The notes beneath the pieces are model-generated. The model ran no database searches and was not told where the DNA came from. It saw only the letters and a list, made by a program, of their open reading frames with translations. Both the position numbers and the translations under genes were made by a program. This document shows positions 7,119 to 51,100 of a stretch of DNA of 64,000 nucleotides, in pieces. This DNA comes from Zygnema circumcarinatum SAG 698-1b. Taxonomy: Eukaryota > Plantae > Zygnematophyceae. Each line of letters begins with the position of its first letter. The stretch's first letter is position 1. The stretch is taken from contig CM074804.1 of the NCBI GenBank assembly GCA_037447605.1, positions 682,001 through 746,000 on the forward strand, given 5' to 3'.

Positions 7119-7492
7119 GAGAATCAATTGTCCAATGGTTGTCATTGGCATTGGTTGGCTGAGTAGCCAGTCAATGCTTACAACCAAATTGCTAACCATA
7201 AACCCCTAAACCATCATCATAATCATCATCATCAAATGAAAAAGCATGCCACAAAGAGGCATACAAGTATACAACAGAAAAAAAAAATCAAAAATCGTCC
7301 AAAAGGATGGCATTTTAAGTCAATTCAAGCACGTGCAAAGCATTTCATTTTTAGGGTTTGTCAATTTTTTTCTTTTTCCAACTGCCGTCCGCGGACTTCA
7401 CTTTTTTCGCATCTCGTTGCATCACATCACGGTCCCAAACATACTTGTCTCGTCGTATGTTGCCGTGACCAATCATTTTGCTTCACGTGTTC

Positions 7493-8355
7493 AAACTTTC
7501 ATTGAACTCGCGATGGCGAGGCCATCAAATGTACATGGACAAAGGCAAAATGTGGAACCACGAAGGACTGGTCACAAAGGACCGAAACACAATAAAACGA
7601 AGCTAGGAGCGGAAAATTACGTCTAGGCACAACAACGCAGCCCTAGAAGCAGCCGCGAAGGTCACCGATGTGAGGCACGTCGCGAGGAGGGAGCGGCAGA
7701 AGTCCACCAACACGATCACCAACAACCGCGAAGACGCTAAAGAAGCGAGAAGCTTGGTGTAACGCTGTGCGCGGCGTAAAATACGCTGCCGTATAAAAGG
7801 TAGCCAAGACGCCGGAGGAGGGCTTCCGGGGCCGTGCATCTCGAAGGAGTGATGGGCGCACTGGCAAAGGAAGGTGTCCAAACAGGTGTCGAGGCAGCCA
7901 AAAATCTCAATAGCCATAGGAACAAACTCGTCGGCCGCATGCACTGGCGAAGGAAGGTGTCCAAACGGGTGTCGAGGCAGCCAAAAATCTCAATAGCCAT
8001 AGGAATAAACTCGTCGGCCGCATCACGAGGAGCATATCGCGCTCACTGCGAAGGGCGCGCTCGTAACGGCCACGCCTTCGCTGTGATGTGTTGCCGCGTG
8101 ACAATAAATCGCGACGGGTTGGATCGGCCAACACAATATCCCCAAAAATGCGCCGGGCACCATCCATAAGAGCCAAATCAGGGCGAACTCCGCGCTCGCC
8201 ACGAATAGTCGGCCGTGGGGACACTAGGTGGCTCGGCTCCCGTCGCACAAGGTAGTTAGCTTCTTGAGCCACCGCAGCAATCGCATCGCGCACAACATTA
8301 TGAGCCAAAATGCGTTCGCCCCCATGTGCGCATCGAAGAAGATGAACGCCCTCCA
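7493..8355 (-). mobile_element. 5'-truncated CRE-like non-LTR retrotransposon (restriction-like endonuclease end), decayed
   Basis: Translation gives HLLRC...AHNVVRD, RPDLALMD...GDIV (PD-D/E core) and FVPMAIEIFG. An 83-bp internal tandem duplication (7858-7940/7941-8023) breaks the frame. The direct repeat ACGTGTT(C) at 7485 and 8356 is a candidate TSD. Confidence 0.8.
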
Positions 8356-9318
8356 ACGTGTTCCATCCTTATACTTTGTAGACGCGCGCGATTCGTACAT
8401 TTCAAATCACCATCCGTACACCCGACGAAAAAAGGTCTGTATCTATTCTACAAAAGTATGAAACAGCATAAATCGCTAAAAAATCCTTTGTAATCGCTGC
8501 CCGGCGAAAAAGTCACTGTTTTTAGAAAAAAAAGTGACTGTAAATAGTACTTTTGACTTCTGTAGGGATCAATGTCGGTGCCGTACACCTCCTTAAGACC
8601 GTACAGTGTGGTACAAAAAGGTTCTATGTGAGAATTGCGTCGAAGCTAACGGGAACTGTCACATCGACGCGTTTATACGCCATAGAACGGAGGAGAACCG
8701 TACGTCGGTGGCAGAGTTCGTTCAGATTAGGGTTTGGTCCGTATGGATTGTGGTTTTCCAGAATCAGCACTTGCCGTTTGTTGCGTAACCTGCAGGTAGC
8801 ATTGTATTCGCCTGTAGGCATGTACTAGTTTTGAACTCGCACTTTTTCAGAGATTAAACCCTAAAACTCGACCATGATTGATTTTGGATTTTGATACTTT
8901 CTCAGAATCAGTACTTGTCTTTTGTTTGTACAGAACAGTAGAGCCATGTGTGCGCTGAGACACATGTACCAGTTTCGAATTCCCTTGTTTTCGGATCAAA
9001 ATCCAGAAACCCTAATTTCTTGAAACTCTAAAACCCTGAACCCTAATTTCTTGGAACCCTAAAATCTCTGATTGAAACTCTAAAACCCTGAACCCTAATT
9101 TCTTGGACCCCTCACAATTTGATTTTCGCCTGAAGACCAAAGCCATACCCGAAAGTTCGAGAAACGCAATGCACAAAACTAAATGAACAAGAACCTAAAA
9201 CTTTTAACCGAACCAAAATCTCAAGACTCAAATCCTGAACCCTGCACCATGTAAAACCTCTGCAACCCTAATCCGCCACTGAACCCTAATCCGCCTCTGA
9301 GGCTGCCACGTGTCAACA

Positions 9319-15920: not shown

Positions 15921-23892
<7,972 letters not shown>

Positions 23893-31594: not shown

Positions 31595-32819
31595 TCAGAA
31601 GAGCTGCTGCGAGTCAGAAACTGCTGCGAGTCGCTTGCATTGTAGAAATTGGAATAAAATTTCAGTAATCACTTCTTGGTAGCGGGATTAGGTAGAAAGA
31701 TCAAGCTAGATTGATCAGCGGGAAGAGTGGGAGAGAATGCACTCTCCCTTGGGAGCGAGATAACATTCGGGTTTATTTTTGAAACAGCGAAGGACCTGTG
31801 AAGAGTTTAGGAAAAAGACGCTCCGCCAAACGTTAGGCGATAGTGCATTTACGTAAATATTACGTTAGGATGAGGGTACAGACTTAGTGAGATAACGTTA
31901 GAGTTCTAGAGGAATTCCTTTTTTCTTTAACGTTTCTTGTATTTGGCACTATTGGTCCAAGCACAAACGTTAGTGAATTGAGTGGGAGGATGTGTAATCA
32001 GTGACGCTGCTGAGCGAATAACTAACAAAAACTGTAACTGCAAACCTCAAGTCATGATTCGGGAGTTTTGAAAAACTGGCTATTCTATAATATTCGCTAT
32101 CCTTCCTTCTTATCTTCCTGTAATGATGATTGATAGAAGAGCACTGCTACAGAATACACCGCTATCGCCCTCCCTGCAAAGCCGAGCCGTAGCGCCGCCA
32201 TGGCCACTGCCCTGCGGCTTCTACCTCCGGCCAGCACAGGAAGGAACCACCGCTCTATGTAACTCGTCCGCTCTGTAATGTCGTTACCAGTCGCTGCTTC
32301 TATGACGGGAATTTCTCCGTCATCATTTACGGGATTGTCGGAGGTCCAGAGAAACACAGTAGAACAGGAAATACTGTACCGAAAATTACGGACGAAGTCA
32401 GAAGCATTTTCGACCGTCCGATGCGAGCAGTCCCCGAAGGCATTGGCCCGATGTACAGTATTTTTTTTTTTTTTTGGTACTGTACAGCATTGTATGACAG
32501 GCGCAGAAAGGACAACGCGTTCGTACATTAGCGTCGCCCTTAACAACAGCGCTGTTCAACTGCGGCAGTTCTGTCTGTCGCCGAGCGTTGCCCAGTCACG
32601 ACACGCCACGTAACTCACGGAACCGCGTGTTTGATGTACCATTGGACCAACCGTTGGACCAGCCGTTGGTCCAATGGTTCGGCCAGCCAGCCAGCCAGTC
32701 TGCTGCGTGCCTTCGTGGGCAGGAGAGGAGAGGGTCAAGGTGGAAGCTCAAGGCTGGCCGTTTGAAGCCAGAATTGGAATAGGAAGGCAGGGGCTCGTCC
32801 AGGAGGAGCAGGAGTAGCC

Positions 32820-35469
32820 ATGGCGGCTTCGTTGACCGTCCAATGCTCAATGACCTCCTCTGCAATTCAGCCTTCGTTTCCCCCGAGGACGCCTGGCTTC
32901 CGCCTCTCGCCGCAGCGCTCTCCTGCTGCGCTCATCGGAACCTTTGTGTCTGCAGGAACTCAACAATCAGGTCGTGCATTCGCTTCAACCATAAGACGCG
33001 CAGTTATAACGTGCCATGGCTCTGAAAGCCATTCAGGCAAGCCGGTCCCTCACTCGCATAGTCATAGTCATAGCCACAGTCATCCACAGCAAGTGGGCAA
33101 CGTTCCGTTGTCAGCGCAGAATAATGCTGAGCACGTGGAGATAATGCATGCGCGTGACGCAAACCTTGATTCTGAGAATGGGCAACGCAATCAGCATAAG
33201 GAAATGCGCAAAAACTCTATCGTGCAACTGGAAATAACTCATACTCACAAGTCACATGCACACGAGCTTCATCTTCATCTTCGTCACCCCAATATGCAGA
33301 AGGCAATGTCAGAAAAAGGCTCGTCGGAGGCATCAGCTGGTTCTTATGAGGGCAACGGCAATGGACATCATCATCGTCATCATGACCATGATCATCAACA
33401 TATGCATGACCATCACCATCACGCCCATCACGACGATCAGGACATTGAACGCCACAGCCACTCCCACAGTCATCTTCACAAGCATTCAAACGAGGTTCCC
33501 TCAAAAAACAATTCATCCGATTCAGAAGGCAAGCACGGGCACGGAAGTCTCGAACCAGGCAGCAGAAATACCCAAAAACATAATGGAGGCTCCATTACCT
33601 TCGCAGTCTCCAGTCAGTGGCGGCCGAGGAATGAGCCCATGGAACGAGGAGCTGGTGCTGGAAAGGTGCTCTTTGTGGATGCTTACACGGCAGGTGTAGC
33701 CGGAGACATGATGGTGGCTGCTCTCCTGGACCTCGGTGTTCCATGGGAGGTCCTTGCCGACGGACTGCAGCACTTAGGGCTCGGAAAATGCCGCTGTGAG
33801 GTTATTCCGACAGAGCGTTCCGCCATTGTAGCAACCCGGTGAGCAAGGTTCCCCCTTTTTTTGTTTCTTTTAGAAGTTTCACATTAGAAACAGAGGCTTG
33901 AATCTCAAAAATTGGCTGCAAGAGTGCCTGCAATATTGAGCAGCTACGGGCTGGTTTACTTAAATCTTTAGCTCCGTTAGAAGGTTGACTCGGGGAGATC
34001 TTTCCAGATTTGGTCGCCACATACTCTCTACTTTTTGGATTCAGGATGTTTAAGTATTAGACGTGTCCCACACATCGTAAATGGATTGGGACAAGTTTAA
34101 GTTGTTGCCTTGCAATGTGAGGATATGGTAAAGTCGAGTAATGCCTTAGGATAATTAAAGGGACCTTTGGTGTCTTTAAACGAAGCTACAGCCGTAGTAA
34201 TATGTTCTGAGAGACCTTCCTTCAAGAAGTATTGCCTCCTGTATTCTTAAGCATGACTGATCTGGTATTCTGTGGTCTGCAACGGTGTATTTTTTTGCAT
34301 ACTAAGTCAGTTCATGGTTGTATGGTGGCTCTATGCCGGCCAGAATCTTGAGCTGCTTGTTGCCGCGAGGCACTTTTCACGTGTGGCAGGTTCATAGTGA
34401 AAGAAGACTCACCGCAGCCTTTTCGTGACTATTCTGTTATTCAGCAGATGCTGGAACATTCTGGACTGCCAGCAAGCGCCCGTGGCATAAGTGAGAAGGC
34501 CTTCCGACTTTTGGCAGAGGCAGAGGCTGCAGTGCATGGAGTGGACGTCGACTCAGTGCATTTCCACGAGGTGATCCTCACTTGTTTGTATTTACTGCTT
34601 TCGAAAAACTTCCCCTTGTTATCTTAGCTTCTACAATCATTTCTTTTGTTTATTGGGATGCCAAACGATTTCCGTCTCCGAATTAAGAACTTGCAAGTGG
34701 TAACGTGTGGAGTGTCCAAATTCGCTGGTGTACGTAAAATGGGATGTTCTTGACCGTAGGAAGTTCCATGGTCTTGCATTTGGCAGCGCTTCATTTAGCG
34801 TTACCTCTATGCTTCAAGCGAAGTAGTGTATAGTCAGTGAGAGCTCAAGTTTGCGTGTGATTCTCGTCCAGACTTGAAGGTACAGCCGCATGTGAACGAC
34901 CTCTTGTCTGTTGTGTGTGTAGGTGGGAGCGGTAGACTCCATTATTGACATTGTGGCTGCTTCACTTGGCCTTGCCTACATTGGAGCATCTCGTATTGTC
35001 GTATCTCCCCTTCCCATAGGCCGAGGCATCATTCGAGGAGCAGCACATGGGCCCCTACCCTCCCCTGCACCTGCCACTCTTGGCATCATCTGCAGGTGAT
35101 GATGACCCTCGTTCTCCCTTCTATCTGTAGCATCCTTTCGTAAGCTCCTCTCACGAACATCTTCAAACGTATAAACCTAACAGTTTTTCGTCCGATTTCG
35201 ATTGGCTATTAGGGTTTGACAGTCAGCATTCAGGACTGATTGAATTGGGAGTAACTGAATATATGGGCAGGTGTCAACTGCCCACCTTTGATGCAAGGGG
35301 GGAGGGAGAGCTTGTCACTCCCACGGGAGCGTGCATTGTTGGAGCGGTCGCTGAGGAAGCGAGCGCATGGTGTTCTATGCGCCCCCTAAGGACTTCCTAT
35401 GGGGCTGGAACCAAAGTCCGAGTGGATCGACCTAATTTACTGCGCCTTGTATTGGGGGATCCGCTTTAA
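32820..35469 (+). CDS. larC: LarC-family (DUF111) nickel-pincer cofactor Ni-insertase homolog, N-terminal (LarC1-like) part only, with predicted plastid transit peptide and His-rich extension
   Basis: Exons 32820-33838, 34390-34570, 34923-35095 and 35271-35469 splice in frame through GT-AG introns. Motifs: LFVDAYTAGVAGDMMVAALLDLG, FRLLAEAEAAVHG..VDSVHFHEVGAVDSIIDIV, AHGPLPSPAPAT, GEGELVTPTGA, YGAGT and RPNLLRLVLG. Confidence 0.9.
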
Positions 35470-36716
35470 AAAAAAAAAACTGAATAGCGGAGGTTAGGGG
35501 GGTGGGAAAGCTTAGAGTCATGGGCTCCGAGGGCTGGCAAGGTCAGGTATTGTATTGAGGAGTCGCCGATTTGGCACTTAGGCGTAATGTATCATGTTTC
35601 TATCGTGGACCAGGGACTCCGGGAAAGTGGAGTTTTCGTTTGGAAGCTCTGAGCTTCGGTACAAAGAGGCCTTTGCCTGTGTGGAACTCCCCCTTTCCAA
35701 GAGGCAGGTTCGGGAGTTTGGAAGTGTTTCGGGGCTACTCAATCTCTCTTGTGGAAGTTGAATATATTGAATGATGAAGGCAGTCCGTCGTTAGCGCTTG
35801 CCAGCCCCTTCTCCTTATGAACTTGCCCGTCGCATTGTTTGGAGTTTGTGGCAGTTCACGTCATGACCATGCGGTGTTGACATGGAGTGACATAAATGTA
35901 TGCATGCATGCATGTCATGACGCACTACACGCATGACCTCATCAATCCATCCACCCATCCTCCGTACCACGCTCGTACGGTCGGTCACAGTCACAGAGCG
36001 CCTGCGCCTGCCGGCTGCCCACCGAACATTTCCCGACGCGCGCACCTGATGCAGTCCGTACTGATTCGTACGATACCGTACTGCGAACTTCTGGTCAAAG
36101 GTCCAACATCCCCCTCCCAGCGGCCCGCGGACTTACCAATAGAAACCCGCCACGTCAGCCAATGTAACACGTGACGATTTCCCATTGGATCATGGTCGAG
36201 CGGCCTGGCGCCGTTGCCCCTCCCTTCCTCCCCTGGCGGCGGCCCTGCGCACTGGCGGCCAGGCGCTAGGCACAGACCGTACATTGTCGGCAAGTCACAC
36301 GTGTGGAGTACAAGGCATGTACGGACGGGAACCAGCTGGCCTGACGGCGGCTCGCACCTCCCGCTCAGGCTTCCCTCTCTCGCAAAACAGCTTGCAGCCC
36401 CTCGCTCCCTGCCTCCCTCCCTCCCTCCCTCCCTCCCTCCCTCTTGAAAAAACAGTGAAGATCGCTGCGCTTTCCGGTGCATTGAGGCTTTATTCGCGCT
36501 CGTGACAGGGATCAAATCAAAATCCTTTGACCAAATATTTCGCTTGCTTCGCGTTGCAGTCACAACTCTGTCGCATTCCTTCGTTTGAATGGTTGCAGCT
36601 GCTGGAGACACTGCAAGACCTAATCATGCGGAGACCCTGAGCGCTTGCAAGCTCTATCAGCAACCCTCAGATGATCACTTTACGGCTTCAGGAGCATCAG
36701 CGGCGGCGCTTCTGTG

Positions 36717-39700
36717 ATGCTTTTGCTGCTGGATTGTGCAGATCCTCCTCCTGAGACCCCAAAATTTCCTGAAACTCGAACTAGCAGTATGAGCAACCTC
36801 CCCTCTCCCACTGGGCGGAGCAGAGACATTCGATCCCGCAGCAAGCTGACCCCGCAGGAGCGCTACCAAAGCGGATCAGACGATGAGGGAGGCCTCGGAA
36901 GCTGGACGAGCTCCAAGTCCTGGCGGAAAGGAAAGGCGCGAAAGAAGCTCATGTCGTGCCTGGGCTTAGCTCTCCTTCTTATTGCAAATGCAGCTGTATG
37001 GCTGCGTGTTTTCCGTCCTTCCTATGGCGGGGGAGGGAAGAATGAAGCGCAAGTGCATCACGTTGTGCGAGCAGAAATTCATACGGAATACGCATCACAG
37101 GATTATCAGCTTCACATTTTAGTGTTCGCAGATTTCAATTTCATGTCTGCAGATGAGCTGCCCAATGGCTGGGAGCTTTCTGCGGGAAGCACTGGGGCGG
37201 CTGGCGTTAGCAACACTTCATCAGATCCGTTTGCAAGGTGGGAGAAGGCGCTGGATGACGTCATGCTTTCCTTGATGAGCGCAGAATATGAAGGGGATCG
37301 CGTCAGCTTGACAGTTGTCGCCTGGTCGAGCGATGCACTCGGGAAGGAGAGAATGAGAGAGAAGTTGGAGAAGATTGTATGGATCAGTGGGCCAAAACGA
37401 GTGCTTTTAGGGGACAGCCTCCAGTCCTTCCCGTCTTCGAAGCTATGGTGGCCCTCCTCTCCTTCAGAGCAAGCTTTCTTCTTGAGTCTGCGATCGCGGG
37501 TGATGCCGGAGTTTTATGAGCATCTCAAGAAGTCGGTGATGAAGTCTATGGCGGCGTCGGATTCGGGGTCTCCTACATTGTATGGAATCAGCTTGCTGCC
37601 TTTGTGGCTGCTGGGATCAGGTGAGTGTTTGCCCTCATACACACAAAACTGTGTTCCTTATTGATCACCGTTGTCACCTCTCGTTGTAGTGTGCGCGTCT
37701 CCTGATTAGTACGTTCCAAGTTCGCTTCAAATGTTTTGGAATTAGCCTTGAGGATGACAATGTTCTAGCGCCGTGATTTTTTGAAAAAGGGAGTGTAATC
37801 GAAATGACCTAGATTTGCGCGCGGACTGCTGCCAACGCATTTTTTTCAGCATTTCTTGGAATCCCAATTGTTGTCGCTTCCCGATTAAAAGTAGGTTAAA
37901 GCTAAGTCTGGGTGGTTACAAAGAGGACTTGAACAGGCCAAATATTAGCCTATCAGTAACAATACTTTAGTCTTCCGTGAAAAGCAGGTGCCAAGGGAAT
38001 AACTTAGTAGAGCTGGAATAAAGCTGCATTTAACGGAAGTCGATTATAGTTTGTTGGTAAATGCCGTGTCAAATTTAAATTATAGAGAGGTTCCTTCCCT
38101 ACAATGGAGGTACTTAAATCTAATTTGTGCTTGACGCTTGTTCTACATTGGACAAGACTCATATGACAAGTATAAAAGTCAGCAAATCGATATAAGCGAT
38201 CTTCACTACTGTTGGTATTGTGTGATCATTTTTTTCACTTCATAACGAAATCGAAAAAAATTCTATATGTAACTGGTCAGTTTGGATACCAACATGTGAC
38301 ACACGGTTTTGCTGCAGGCATGAAGCTAGAGGAAGCTTCGAAAATGTCACTTCGTCGAGAAATGGGGCACGAATGCCAGCTTGTTTTTGGAACACACTGG
38401 CAGGAGCTTGTACAGTGGCAAAAATACACATTTCAGCCTCCACCTCCCCCTCCAGCAGATGATAGCAGGAAGCCATGGAAACCTATGAAAGTGTATGAGT
38501 TCAATCAAGTCTGTGAAATGAGCTGGCAGGCGGCTCTCACTTCTCTCATGCAGGCAAAAGGGGCATTCAATTTGTTCAAAGGCGCTGTTGATGGCAAACT
38601 TCTTTGCAAGTACGAAGCATCAGGGGCTAAAAAGGCAGCGATGGAAGAAATCGATAGTAGTAGTAAAGCGAGCAAGGTAAGTCGCAAGGAAAATGCCGGA
38701 AGAGAAGAGAGAAGTGATGAGAAGGTGGCAGAGATTAGTGAAGGTCACGAAAGTGAAGGAGAGAAAGGAGGGGATGGCGGAGAAGATGCTGACGCGAAGA
38801 GAAGGCGGCAGAGGAGAAAGCTGCAGCAGGAGGAGAACACGGAGTCTGCAAGTTCTCATTGGCTGACAGAGGTTCCACAGTTCAATTTGTGTGGCAAAAA
38901 GATAAGGGGAGGAACCCTTGCAACAGATAAGTCGGAGCTGAAGAAACTGATGGCAAAGATCCAGGTGCGCTACAGCGGAGATAAACTGGCCCCCCTCCAA
39001 ACAGTTCATCCTAATTAAACACGCTTTGAGAAGGATTATAAACAAGGGTCAAGTCAAGGGTGGATCTCAGTCCTTACTGCCTACGCTGAGATGCTCACTT
39101 TCTGGGAATGGCTTGCAGCAGGAAAGATGGCAAAGACTTGATAAGTTGATATTGATATTGACTGCAATGATGTATATCCTCTTCTTGGACTAGAGATATT
39201 GTGGTTCTTAGAGTCTATAGCATCTGAATGCTATGCTTGACAGATGAAACAATGATCAAGATCTTTTCATGGCAGCAGGGTCACAATGGTTTGGGCCGAA
39301 TGTGAATACACACATAAGCATTGTCTTGAGACAACGACTTAATCTGGCTGAATATTATAGAATTGAAGTCTTAGTCAATTTTTTGTAATTATGTATCGAG
39401 GCTTGTAATTGATACATTCATATTGCCGTAGTTCTTCAGGTTACCATGAGGCTTATGTTTGTCGATCGGCCTTTGGCTATTTTTCTCCGGTTCTATGGTC
39501 CGAGCAGGTGCAACATTCTGTGATTGCCGTAATGACAAGTGCGGGCTTCGATGATATGCTGGAAAATTGGCTCTGTTTTATTTCTGAACTGGGCATAGAA
39601 AACTACTTCATCATTTCTGATTCCTTGGAGCAAGCTACCAGCCTCTCCAAGCGCGGGCATTCTGCCTTTTACTTGCAACTACCTCAAAGTGGAAGTGGAA

Positions 39701-48186: not shown

Positions 48187-51100
48187 ATGTCGGAATCTAC
48201 GCAGGAGGGCTTTTTGACCGAGCATCAGCGTGAGGTATTTGATGCAGTGGCACAGGACCGTGAGCCCGTTAAGGAAGCCACTGGACCTCGACCTCGCATT
48301 GAGCACGCAACTAAGCATGCACCTGTTTTCAGCAAGCATCATCATGTGATTGCACCGAAGCAGGAAAGGAGGTCACATACAGTAAAGAATGGGCGGCCCA
48401 AGAAAGGTCAGCAAGAAGCAGAACGATTTATTTTTGGACTGCGGCACTCGTTGTGTCTTGCATCTCATTGAAAGTTAAAATCATTGTCGTTGTAGAACCC
48501 TGAACGCTGAATTCTAGGTTTTGGCATAGATTGAGTGATTGTCGCAGTTGATCATTGGGTTCTCACTGTACCACACTTGAGTCATTCAGAACATTACCCT
48601 TTTTTTTGCCTTGAATTCAAGGTCTTCCTTTAGTCCTGGTCTTGAGCATGTGTTTGGATGTCTTGCCTCTCGTTCTCACATTCAAAATGTTGAAGTTAAG
48701 ATTTTTTTTTTCTGGTTGGGATCTATGTCAGCAGGTGGAGGTGGAGGAAGGGGGACTTGGGGCAATCCACTCATCCCCTATACCGATTATGACAATTCTG
48801 ACCCGAGGGATCCAAACTACGATGACGGATTGGTGAGTGCTAGCCACTCTGTAATTTCAGTGACGCAGTCACTCCAGTAGCTCACTGTTTTTGCAGTTGA
48901 TTGATGCCATTCAAGCTGTTGGACTGAATGCGGGTAGAGTCTCAAAGATGACGAGATCCTTACTAGGCTAGTTGCACATGCATTAACACAATGCTAGCAT
49001 GTGCAGGGGTCGTACTTGACGCAGTTTTTGTTGGAGACTGTGTTCTTTACAGGAGTCCTACGAACTGCTGGGAGCCCCCTTAGCAGAGTCAGTAGAGGAA
49101 TATAAGGCAAGGGTTGTTGCTGTTTTGGAGGAATACTTTGATTCAGGAGATATACCAACGGCTGCTGCTGATCTCACTGACCTGGGCTCCGCTAGTTATC
49201 ACCATTATTTCATAAAGAGGTTAATCTCTCTTGCTCTCGATCGCCATGATCGTGAGAAGGAGATGGCCGCGTCTCTCCTCTCAGCGCTTTACGTTGATGT
49301 TATTCAGCCAGAACAGGTGTCAAAAGGTTTTTCTCGCTTACTAGAATCTGTGGAGGACTTGGAGATAGACTGTCCTGATGCTGCCGACGTTGTTGCTCTA
49401 TTCCTAGCACGAGCTGTGGTGGATGACATTCTGCCTCCTTCCTTTCTGTCGAAGACGAAGAAAGACTTCCCTGAAGAGTCAAAGGGTGCAGCAGTGATAC
49501 ATATGGCAGAATCCCATTTAGCTACCCCACATCACGCAGAGAGAATAGAGAGGGCTTGGGGAGGAATAGGAAAGCCCACAGTAGAGGGTGCCAAGACCAA
49601 AATTGTACAACTATTGAAGGAATACGTAGTCAGCGGTGACACTGCAGAGGCTTGCCGCTGCATTCGTGAGCTAAATCTGCCATTCTTCCATCATGAGGTG
49701 GGTACGGTGACCTGATGTGATGTTGTTTGTACTATAGTGCTGATTCAGACGCATTGGCAAGTTTCAGATGGGCAGGTCAGCAGTTGTGTCCGCATAAACT
49801 CGTTTTGTTAGGGCTTTCAAACCTTCTGCAACATACATACCGAGAATTCTGTGGTCCGGCTCAGTTTTCAGCAATAAATGCCAATATATAGGTTTATGTC
49901 AGCATCTAGAGCGAACACGACATGTAGTATATGGAGAGTAGGAGAGGATGCAAGTTTTCGTCTATCCTATCTAACATCGGAGTTGACAATTGTTATATCT
50001 TGTTTCCTTTGTGCAGGTGGTGAAGAAGGCTCTGACGATGGCTATGGATGAGCGGGACAGTGGTGAAAATCAATTGTTGAGGCTTCTGAAAGAAACTGCG
50101 GAAGAGGGACTGGTTTCCATCAATCAAATGACGAAGGGGTTTAGCAGGTTGTTCGATGCAATCGATGACCTTGTACTAGATATTCCAAATGCAAGAGAGC
50201 TTCTGCAAAACTATGTGGCTAGAGCCACAGCAGAGGGATGGTTGGGGCACACATTCGCGGACAATGTCTCAAAGGAGTTGGTGGCTGCCGAATTATCAGC
50301 GCATCTATCTGAGGCGAAGACTTTACAGAGCTACAAGCAGAAATCAACGGAAATAGTCCTGGAATTTTTTGAGAGTGGTGACGTAGGTGAAGTTTCACGC
50401 AGCTTAGAGGAGCTAGCATTTCCAGACCTGCTCCATTTGTTCGTGAAAAAACTGATCACACTGGCAATGGATCGCAAAAACCGTGAAAAGGAAATGGCCT
50501 CAGGGTTATTGTCATCTCTTTACCCGGAAGTCCTGCCAGTTGATCAGGTTGAAGCAGCTTGCACTAATTTGCTGAATTCAGTGGACGATCTCGCTTTAGA
50601 CATACCGCATGCAGCTGATGAACTTGCTCTGTTCATATCCCGAGCAGTAGTGGATGATATTTTGGCGCCTCTCTATTTGACTTGGGCTCGTGAAGCCTTT
50701 AGTGAGGGCGGTCTTGCAGCCAGTGTGGTGCGCGCAGCGCAGGCCATGCTAGGGGCACGTCATGCAGGAGAGAGAATTCTTCGCTGCTGGGGGGGGGCAT
50801 CAGGGAGGACAGTCGATGATGCAAAGGAGAAGATCGCCCGGTTGTTGGAAGAGTTCGAAACGGGAGGCGAGATGGCTGAAGCTTGCCAGTGCATGAGGGA
50901 CTTAGATCTCCCATTTTTTCACCATGAGGTAAGGCATGAGGCATAAGAAAGCAGTTTTGGATAGCAGAGCTGCGGTATGGTTGTCGGTAGTTGTTGAAGT
51001 TGCATGTTCAGTTCATCAATGCAGGTCGGATGGATGCATGGGTGCAAGCTAATGCATGGACATTGATATCTCTTCACAGATGGTTGCAGTAGCACCCTGC

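Follow-up and report, generated by a model that had tools for sequence, protein, structure and literature searches.

A spliced and expressed gene for a LarC1-only homologue in the nuclear genome of a streptophyte green alga

Results

Gene structure and expression

The window (the whole 64-kb stretch of DNA that was analysed) contains, on its + strand, a gene for a LarC homologue that is divided among four exons; all of the features given below are on this strand. Splicing of the window DNA at GT-AG borders yields a 1572-nt ORF, ending in a TAA stop, that encodes a protein of 523 amino acids. In this splice model, exon 1 (32820-33838) has three parts: positions 32820..33014 encode residues 1-65, an organelle-presequence-like leader ending in VITC; positions 33015..33629 encode residues 66-270, a His-rich, low-complexity stretch that is a putative nickel-binding or storage region; and positions 33630..33838 encode residues 271-340 (the last codon by its first two bases), the start of the LarC1 module including the AGDM loop with the equivalent of D15 (LarC1 residues are numbered as in Moorella thermoacetica). 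Exon 2 (34390..34570) carries the equivalents of R71, E104, H108, H116, H118 and E119 (in QPFRDY, AEAEAAVHG and VHFHE), exon 3 (34923..35095) those of D124, D128 and H160 (GAVDSIIDIV and AAHGPLPSPAPAT), and exon 4 (35271..35469) the end of LarC1, with the E187 equivalent in GELVTPTGA, the segment DRPNLLRLVLGDPL and the TAA stop. The introns all have GT..AG ends and are of 551 nt (intron 1, 33839..34389, phase 2), 352 nt (intron 2, 34571..34922, phase 0) and 175 nt (intron 3, 35096..35270, phase 2).

RNA contigs from four runs in three studies are joined precisely at the predicted sites, with 551, 352 and 175 nt left out, and one contig of 1933 nt covers positions 32723-35733 with all three introns removed. 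The RNA depth was 50-156 in the exons, whereas it was 4-14 in the introns. From the RNA contig starts at 32691 (X1), 32723 (X3) and 32727 (X2), the minimum extent of the 5′ UTR is 32691..32819, and one X4 contig extends upstream of 32600. The 3′ UTR has a minimum extent of 35470..35800, as RNA contigs run unspliced to at least 35800, and contains neither another splice joint nor LarC2 coding sequence. The four GT-AG exons proposed in a preliminary description of this DNA are therefore borne out by an intact reading frame and exact RNA junctions, and the LarC motifs named there are all present (AGVAGDMMVAALLDLG, HFHEVGAVDSIIDIV, HGPLPSPAPAT and GELVTPTGA).

The neighbouring genes are eukaryotic; the ORFs around the LarC1 gene had no Pfam match, and lar-type clustering was absent among them. 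The earlier argument against bacterial contamination is upheld by the RNA junctions, by three intron positions that are shared with the Closterium gene, by orthologues on eukaryotic contigs, and by the eukaryotic neighbours. These results confirm that the gene is a genuine LarC homologue, that it belongs to the nuclear genome of a eukaryote, and that it is expressed as spliced RNA.

Domain content and the absence of LarC2

LarC of M. thermoacetica and of Lactiplantibacillus plantarum is a CTP-dependent nickel cyclometallase (PDB 12bi-12bl; PMC13510736), and in the cryo-EM model of 2026 CMPylation of the substrate is assigned to LarC2 and nickel insertion to LarC1 (PMC13510736). The CTP-binding, CMPylating domain LarC2 corresponds to positions ~235-375 of the Pfam profile PF01969 and to the NCBIfam model NF052512. 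The exons were scored singly against PF01969 (DUF111; profile length 375, gathering score 22.1 bits), and it was found that exons 1 to 4 scored 35.7, 49.3, 55.1 and 48.3 bits, each above the gathering score and with a sum of 188 bits, which is a sum over exons and not a score of the joined protein. The match is far beyond chance. The four exons match profile positions 2-56, 63-118, 120-173 and 181-234, and align to residues 17-76, 83-137, 138-191 and 196-254 of the 12bi chain, respectively. Only positions 2-234 of 375 are covered, and because the profile match ends at position 234, the gene encodes LarC1 and no LarC2; the C terminus of the protein lies at the point where the LarC1-LarC2 linker starts in bacteria. 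With the NCBIfam LarC1 model TIGR00299.2, single exons 3 and 4 scored 55.4 and 47.3 bits, and the orthologues P0001, P0037, P0040 and P0048 scored 170-182 bits against this equivalog model (cutoff 90). The LarC2 model NF052512 had no match in the algal orthologues, whereas the bacterial relative P0004 does match it.

A search of the 64-kb window by tblastn with the LarC2 parts of 11 bacterial LarCs gave no match at E < 0.5, and LarC2 was likewise not found in four algal loci, the stretches searched about three of the other algal genes measuring 10-20 kb. A downstream LarC2 exon, a frameshift, and a readthrough were each considered and ruled out, by the lack of any match in tblastn for LarC queries, whether full-length or C-terminal, by RNA contigs that are unspliced beyond the stop, and by stops in all three frames at most about 10 codons after an A12 run. 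A truncated gene model was ruled out by the same endpoint in at least 29 orthologues, four named algae among them. A standalone LarC2 was sought with residues 285-436 of P0004 as the query, and none of the 56 LarC2-sized matches had a eukaryotic label; three of these, on long contigs, were inspected and are bacterial and adjoin LarC1. This search is weak evidence against an algal LarC2, being bounded by a length window and shared words that a diverged or fused copy could escape. The Mesostigma and Mesotaenium proteomes were included in the database used.

Of the earlier identification as LarC, the homology to LarC1 stands, over PF01969 positions 2-234, and the complete CTP-dependent cyclometallase does not, LarC2 being absent. 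Judged from its sequence, the protein is the LarC1 (nickel-insertion) module only, a LarC of half size. An AlphaFold2 model of residues 40-302 of the orthologue P0040 had a pLDDT of 95.5, and a Foldseek search with it against the PDB (entries to April 2026) gave no match at E ≤ 0.001; this null result is uninformative because the LarC cryo-EM entries are younger than the library and the LarC1 fold has been called unique (PMC13510736). In the ESM Atlas, queried with algal LarC1 and with a bacterial LarB, all clusters obtained were of bacterial LarC and LarB.

Active-site residues

In M. thermoacetica LarC, alanine at D15, R71, E104, H108, H118, E119, D124, D128, H160 or E187 markedly reduced or nearly abolished activity, and substitution of H116 had a moderate effect (PMC13510736). 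In the alignment to 12bi, all 11 of these residues are present in the window protein, comprising the His cluster (H108, H116, H118 and H160) and the pocket (D15, R71, E104, E119, D124, D128 and E187). The 10 residues of strong effect show no variation among the 32 algal sequences, apart from one truncated row that has a gap at D15; H116 is conserved in 29 of the 32. By its residues, the LarC1 module thus appears complete and catalytically intact.

The leader and the His-rich stretch

The claim of an acid-free N terminus rich in S, T, A and R and ending in VITC proved correct in composition: the first D or E of the protein is residue 69, VITC occupies residues 62-65, and residues 1-65 consist of 15% S, 14% A, 11% T (26% S plus T), 9% R and 9% P (6 Pro), with a net charge of +6. 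The VITC|H junction is similar to a (V/I)-x-(A/C) processing site. In composition, this N terminus looks like a transit peptide. Acid-free, basic leaders are also present in Mantoniella, Mesostigma and several metagenomic orthologues. Counting against an import leader, two gene calls of metagenomic orthologues begin directly within the His-rich stretch. The leader is probably of an organelle-import type, directed to the plastid, and may alternatively be mitochondrial.

Of the 205 residues at 66-270, 42 are His (20%), and they form runs that include HSHSHSHSHSH and HHHRHHDHDHQHMHDHHHHAHH. A His-rich stretch is found at the same position in the algal orthologues, being still larger in Mesostigma, and in Myxococcota LarCs; the sequence itself is unconserved. 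Its composition suggests that it probably captures or stores Ni2+.

A green-algal family and its bacterial relatives

The window protein belongs with at least 31 green-algal proteins (including those of Mantoniella, Mesostigma, Mesotaenium and two Closterium) that carry N-terminal extensions and end at the same point to within 0-24 residues. The family end is a ...RPNLLRLVLG motif followed by a tail of 0-24 residues, and the window protein stops 3 residues past LVLG; 29 algal rows have at most 30 residues beyond the aligned LarC1 end. The shared endpoint indicates that the LarC1-only form is not a truncation artefact. In the tree, all 32 algal rows fall into a single clade (SH-aLRT 99), where the window protein groups with Mesotaenium (90) and then with Closterium (94). 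Small clade-specific insertions lie beside the AGDM and AHG loops, and metagenomic members are on eukaryotic contigs with genes for actin, Aquarius, clathrin light chain and kinases. As judged from these sequences, the family is old, being present in Chlorophyta and Streptophyta and predating their split. The searchable literature yielded no paper on an algal or plastid LarC or on a LarC1-only form.

Among bacterial proteins, the nearest relatives come from Polyangiaceae and Myxococcales; they are LarCs of full length with 50-56% identity over LarC1, and the algal clade is nested inside Myxococcota-type bacterial LarCs in the tree. As to a cyanobacterial or other origin, a question raised in the preliminary description, the free tree gave the Myxococcota-type placement, with the cyanobacteria outside of a 65-row clade that contains the algae (SH-aLRT 99). 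In an AU test of the algae and three cyanobacteria as one clade, p was 0.44, which does not formally reject a cyanobacterial (endosymbiotic) origin. What speaks for a Myxococcota-type LarC as the source is the N-terminal architecture: common to the algal and Myxococcota-type proteins (Polyangiaceae L001 and L002, Myxococcales L005, P0004 and P0061) are a His/Asp-rich N-terminal leader and a PLxRGAGxGKxLFxDA extension ahead of the first strand. The Myxococcota-type LarC keeps LarC2 (a median of 158 residues past LarC1), whereas the algal form does not, and the bacterial proteins have no import leader and no introns. At least one of these genes adjoins LarB: in L005, LarB (NF033503, 265 bits) is directly upstream of LarC, which argues for a true NPN gene as the ancestor.

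Discussion

The explanation that we favour, and to which we assign about an even chance, is that the gene encodes an expressed nuclear LarC1-only enzyme with an organelle leader and a nickel-holding His-rich stretch that performs nickel insertion toward an NPN-type cofactor. The gene structure, expression, domain content, residue conservation and family distribution in this proposal were established directly; the nickel binding, substrate, compartment and rest of the pathway we infer. The old green-algal family would derive from a bacterial LarC of the Myxococcota type, its CTP-binding LarC2 domain having been lost. The leader would direct LarC1 into an organelle, probably the plastid, where the His-rich stretch would probably capture or store Ni2+ and nickel insertion by LarC1 would turn a thiocarboxylated pyridinium nucleotide into an NPN-type cofactor. 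The product of a separate gene may perform the activation step of LarC2 in trans, or a substrate that is already a dinucleotide may make this step unnecessary.

There are precedents for function without a fused LarC2 in the natural split LarC1/LarC2 genes and in the conversion of P2TAD. LarC1 and LarC2 of L. plantarum are separate ORFs (PMC13510736), and LarC converts the AMP-dinucleotide analogue P2TAD, an adenine-dinucleotide pincer cofactor being known to exist (PMC13510736, PMC13524815). In bacteria, LarC activity depends on the integrity of the linker and LarC2, and this, together with the absence of LarC2 in our searches, counts against a nickel-pincer explanation. On balance, a nickel-pincer pathway in the alga seems plausible. 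A CTP-independent, LarC2-less plastid route in green algae, ranging from prasinophytes to the streptophytes related to land plants, in which LarC1 metalates a P2TAD/NPAD-type dinucleotide or is itself activated by an unrelated partner, and which feeds a novel nickel-pincer enzyme of photosynthetic eukaryotes, seems to us quite improbable.

It is possible, though we doubt it, that the protein is a repurposed metallochaperone that makes no pincer cofactor and serves as a buffer or in delivery of nickel or another divalent metal, for example in urease maturation or organellar metal homeostasis. Long His-rich segments occur on other metal-delivery proteins, UreE, HypB, SlyD and the N terminus of plant UreG being His-rich nickel chaperones, and to our knowledge plants lack UreE and use the His-rich UreG. 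The very large His-rich stretch of the algal protein fits such a role, as does the finding of neither LarC2 nor another Lar gene at the examined loci. However, a simple chaperone would need neither the whole acidic substrate pocket nor the proposed nucleophile, and D15, R71, E104, E119, D124, D128 and E187 are invariant in the 32 algal sequences across the chlorophyte-streptophyte split. Furthermore, an organelle-type leader would be poorly compatible with a cytosolic urease, and the His-rich stretch was already present in the Myxococcota ancestors, which have LarB and LarC2. We take the algal protein not to be homologous to UreE, HypB, SlyD or UreG, and its His-rich segment sits on a LarC1 catalytic module.

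A canonical split enzyme, in which LarC is CTP-dependent, LarC2 is in a separate nuclear gene, LarB, LarE and a LarA-type enzyme are present and the mechanism is not new, is in our judgement unlikely. Short LarC1 ORFs in bacteria always have a separate LarC2 ORF, as in L. plantarum, so function in trans would be natural, and an algal LarC2 could have escaped our search if it is diverged or fused. In the split systems of bacteria and archaea (L011, L037, L039, L046, L087-L089 and L. plantarum), LarC1 is, as in the alga, a separate polypeptide, there of ~240-390 residues, but the LarC2 ORF is always within about 1-2 kb, often together with LarB, whereas none is detectable near the algal genes, over the 64 kb and the 10-20 kb regions searched. 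No standalone match bore a eukaryotic label, though the two algal proteomes were covered, and with 55% identity between the algal LarC1 and its bacterial kin, a co-inherited LarC2 should be detectable. An assembly fragment of bacterial DNA or a functionless, truncated pseudogene, which the bacterial origin of the gene and the missing C-terminal third of the ancestral protein might suggest, is refuted as far as sequence data go and hardly credible, given three spliceosomal introns removed in well-covered RNA and shared in position with Closterium, an intact frame, eukaryotic neighbours, a common endpoint in at least 31 orthologues, and invariant key residues.

Compared to the LarCs of M. thermoacetica and L. 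plantarum, the algal protein is homologous over the whole length of LarC1 (the four exons correspond to chain residues 17-254) and keeps the His cluster and acidic pocket, whereas it lacks the linker, LarC2, the CTP site and the LarC2 hexamer core. It has in addition ~270 N-terminal residues (leader and His-rich stretch) and is encoded by an intron-bearing eukaryotic gene. In place of H53, H70, H72 and H226 of M. thermoacetica LarC, it has S, F, D and R.

Almost all known examples of nickel-pincer chemistry are prokaryotic, and we know of few nickel-dependent processes established in the plant lineage. An expressed, conserved LarC1 with an intact active site argues that green algae keep an unsought nickel-insertion reaction, possibly in the plastid, and the family-wide half-size form is a hint that the plant lineage has a nickel-cofactor step not yet studied. 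LarA homologues in eukaryotes have been reported only in the GntE branch, the named example being the oomycete Phytophthora (PMC11770544), and this counts against the explanation that we favour. LarAH15/GntE of Phytophthora nicotianae is likewise a bacterial-type NPN-related gene in a eukaryote, but these published cases are LarA homologues of unicellular heterotrophs (PMC11770544), in contrast to the green-algal LarC1 described here. The LarC2-less family is a natural experiment on the separability of the LarC half-reactions, and a LarC1 able to function by itself, in trans, or with a dinucleotide as substrate would provide a direct test of that separation.

No land-plant orthologue was among the best database matches, which suggests that land plants have lost the family; this apparent loss would make the LarC1-only family a marker of metabolic change at terrestrialization. 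The moss DUF111 plus DJ-1 protein PpGLYIII6 (PMC8170915) was considered and is not an orthologue, having by eye a LarC2-like segment. The PpGLYIII6 gene is on an unplaced scaffold and may be a contaminant.

Gene Structure and Transcription

The gene on the forward strand was found to consist of four exons, at 32820-33838, 34390-34570, 34923-35095 and 35271-35469, which are separated by introns of 551, 352 and 175 nt (each GT...AG) and give a spliced frame of 1572 nt with 523 codons and a TAA stop. Each exon singly exceeds the Pfam gathering score of 22.1 bits for PF01969 (Ni_insertion, formerly DUF111), and the matches run in order, with 35.7, 49.3, 55.1 and 48.3 bits at profile positions 2-56, 63-118, 120-173 and 181-234 of 375, respectively. 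In public RNA runs of the same organism (four runs from three studies), contig joints at the predicted sites skip exactly 551, 352 and 175 nt, and a single 1933-nt contig spans 32723-35733 with all three introns removed. Therefore, the four-exon gene proposed in the preliminary description, which had called for both the profile search and the RNA-seq check, was confirmed by an open frame and by exact RNA junctions. Read depth was 50-156 over the exons versus 4-14 over the introns, a profile of RNA plus some pre-mRNA. The transcript starts near 32691-32727 and continues unspliced for at least 330 nt beyond the stop codon.

A 41-nt near-palindrome at 32638-32678 (20-nt arms, 90% complementary, 1-nt spacer), with CCAAT motifs on both strands, precedes the 5′ ends of the RNA contigs by 13-50 nt and could act as a promoter element of the LarC1 gene. 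A 47-codon ATG ORF at 32674-32817 stops 3 nt short of the LarC1 start and would count as an upstream ORF only if transcription started further upstream; one contig of RNA run X4 extends upstream of 32600. A T16 run at 32461-32476 precedes the start codon by about 350 nt, and an A12 run at 35468-35479 begins inside the stop codon; no read differences were reported at this A12 run in the RNA data. Two extra acceptors within exon 2, at 34445 and 34448 (skipping 606 and 609 nt), were seen in run X1 only; use of either would break the reading frame, and with just 29 nt on the contig sides these acceptors could reflect assembly errors or rare unproductive isoforms. Neighboring eukaryotic genes encode a class I aminoacyl-tRNA synthetase (tRNA-synt_1 and Anticodon_1 exons, 18009-19779, reverse strand) and an MA3-domain protein (49990-50946, forward strand), and the ORFs directly flanking the LarC1 gene (e.g., 36714-37664) gave no Pfam match.

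The Protein Contains LarC1 and Lacks LarC2

Because the PF01969 match ends at profile position 234 of 375, the gene encodes only the N-terminal LarC1 half, which in full-length bacterial homologues is followed by about 158 more residues (LarC2). No LarC2 was found in the 64-kb window, queried with whole bacterial homologues and with their C-terminal parts. A frameshift extension as in L. plantarum was excluded, as all three frames stop within about 10 codons after the A12 run. The algal orthologues scored 170-182 bits on the NCBIfam LarC1 equivalog TIGR00299.2 (cutoff 90) and did not match the LarC2 model NF052512, in contrast to the bacterial relative P0004. The protein should thus be classed as a LarC1-only variant, and not as a complete CTP-dependent LarC. 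We are nearly certain that the gene is genuine and functional and that it belongs to a conserved algal family of LarC1-only genes.

Conservation of the Active Site

In the cryo-EM study of M. thermoacetica LarC (2026), LarC2 CMPylates P2TMN, and LarC1 inserts nickel by means of a histidine cluster and an adjoining acidic pocket, in which E104 is the proposed nucleophile (PMC13510736). Alanine at H108, H118 or H160 nearly abolished activity, alanine at D15, R71, E104, E119, D124, D128 or E187 markedly reduced it, and H116A left about 60% (PMC13510736). Exon-by-exon alignment to the deposited chain 12bi (chain index = native number + 18) placed all 11 of these residues in the Zygnema protein; the less critical or weakly conserved positions H53, H70, H72 and H226 are occupied by S, F, D and R. 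None of the 11 residues varies among 32 algal sequences, apart from H116 (kept in 29/32) and D15, where one truncated row has a gap. Such conservation points to a substrate-binding catalytic module rather than a mere metal-binding scaffold. A structure model of the algal orthologue P0040, which is about 60% identical to the Zygnema protein, had a pLDDT of 95.5, and a Foldseek search with it against a PDB copy older than the LarC cryo-EM entries returned nothing useful.

A Green-Algal LarC1-Only Family

Many database proteins, retrieved with single exons or orthologues as queries, have the same layout: the N terminus is extended, in most cases by a His-rich stretch, and the LarC1 domain ends a few residues past RPNLLRLVLG. 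These include proteins of Mantoniella antarctica, Mesostigma viride (559 aa, with a very long HSHSH-type region), Mesotaenium endlicherianum and two Closterium strains, the remainder being from marine and other metagenomes. Three metagenomic members that we examined lie on eukaryotic contigs beside actin, Aquarius, clathrin light chain, LIM and kinase genes, with no lar genes nearby. On one marine picoeukaryote contig (L081), a glyoxalase-II-like gene (HAGH_C, 7270-8481) is found two genes upstream of LarC1; the glyoxalase II reaction yields D-lactate, the substrate class of LarA enzymes, and this single case may be due to chance. A 450-aa metagenomic gene call (P0017) has a Hist_deacetyl region (PF00850) immediately before LarC1 and may represent neighboring genes that the gene caller merged into one.

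Maximum-likelihood analysis of 138 LarC1 domains united all 32 algal rows in a single clade (SH-aLRT 99). Within it the Zygnema sequence grouped first with Mesotaenium (90) and next with Closterium (94), the pattern expected under vertical descent in streptophytes. The Closterium gene has introns at the same three positions. No land-plant orthologue was present among the best 120 and best 150 matches of two large database searches. The only plant "DUF111" report found, the moss protein PpGLYIII6 (Physcomitrella Pp3s30_990), published as "DUF111 + DJ-1_PfpI" (PMC8170915 supplement), was rejected as an orthologue: by eye, it has a LarC2-like segment (…NLDDSSPEW…MKKSRPG…) and not LarC1, joined to DJ-1. 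Its scaffold is unplaced, and bacterial contamination or a fused gene model could account for it.

A few algal proteomes carry automatic annotations of LarC homologues (the UniRef label of the Mantoniella protein is "LarC family"), and Lar genes are present in some unicellular eukaryotes (PMC11770544). Our literature search found no paper on LarC in green algae, on LarC1-only proteins of eukaryotes or on a connection with the plastid.

Origin of the Algal Gene

The preliminary description had left the choice between a cyanobacterial and another bacterial origin to a phylogeny. The algal clade was nested among full-length bacterial LarCs (enclosing branches SH-aLRT 95-99), in a clade that includes Polyangiaceae and Myxococcales, whose LarCs are 50-56% identical to those of the algae; the LarCs of cyanobacteria, with 40-44% identity, fell outside it. 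A His/Asp-rich leader at the N terminus and the extension PLxRGAGxGKxLFxDA are common to the algal and Myxococcota-type proteins and missing in the cyanobacterial ones. In the Myxococcales relative L005, LarB (NF033503, 265 bits) ends where LarC begins, and therefore the ancestral gene appears to have been a genuine NPN-biosynthesis gene. A tree constraining the algae and three cyanobacteria together was not rejected in an AU test (p = 0.44), and so a Myxococcota-like donor, the nearest type in the tree, is favored but not proven.

Possible Function

It is slightly favored, in our view, that the algal protein still serves pincer-cofactor synthesis, in which the LarC1 pocket would bind a thiocarboxylated pyridinium nucleotide and make the Ni-C bond. 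The LarC2 function might be bypassed if the substrate is already a dinucleotide; the AMP analogue P2TAD is converted by LarC, and a pincer cofactor of the adenine-dinucleotide type is known (PMC13510736, PMC13524815). Alternatively, it might be supplied in trans by a separate protein.

A nickel chaperone or buffer without pincer chemistry would fit the huge histidine content and the absence of any detected partner, but it leaves the invariant acidic pocket unexplained, and we consider it doubtful. An ordinary split enzyme with LarC2 encoded elsewhere in the genome seems slightly less probable again: LarC1 and LarC2 are often separate genes in bacteria, always within 1-2 kb of one another, but a database search for standalone LarC2 returned bacterial proteins only. 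Among such bacterial loci, L089 (6001-8681) has the order LarC2, an unknown 273-aa ORF, LarB (AIRC) and LarC1, and in L087 and L088 the LarC1 and LarC2 ORFs overlap by 4 nt beside histidine-biosynthesis genes. Contamination or a pseudogene is highly improbable given the RNA evidence, the introns shared with Closterium and the conservation, which substantiate the earlier argument against a bacterial contaminant.

N-Terminal Leader and Histidine-Rich Stretch

The acid-free N terminus ending in VITC was also recovered as described, with VITC at residues 62-65 and the first acidic residue at position 69. This leader would send the protein into an organelle, more likely the plastid than the mitochondrion to judge by its composition, which is rich in Ser/Thr/Pro and free of acidic residues; we lean a little toward the LarC1-only protein acting in the plastid. 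There are 42 histidines within residues 66-270, a stretch that may gather Ni2+. In two LarC1-only relatives from Logan contigs, P0041 and P0046, the His-rich stretch is C-terminal and not N-terminal, which suggests that this module may be needed and its position free.
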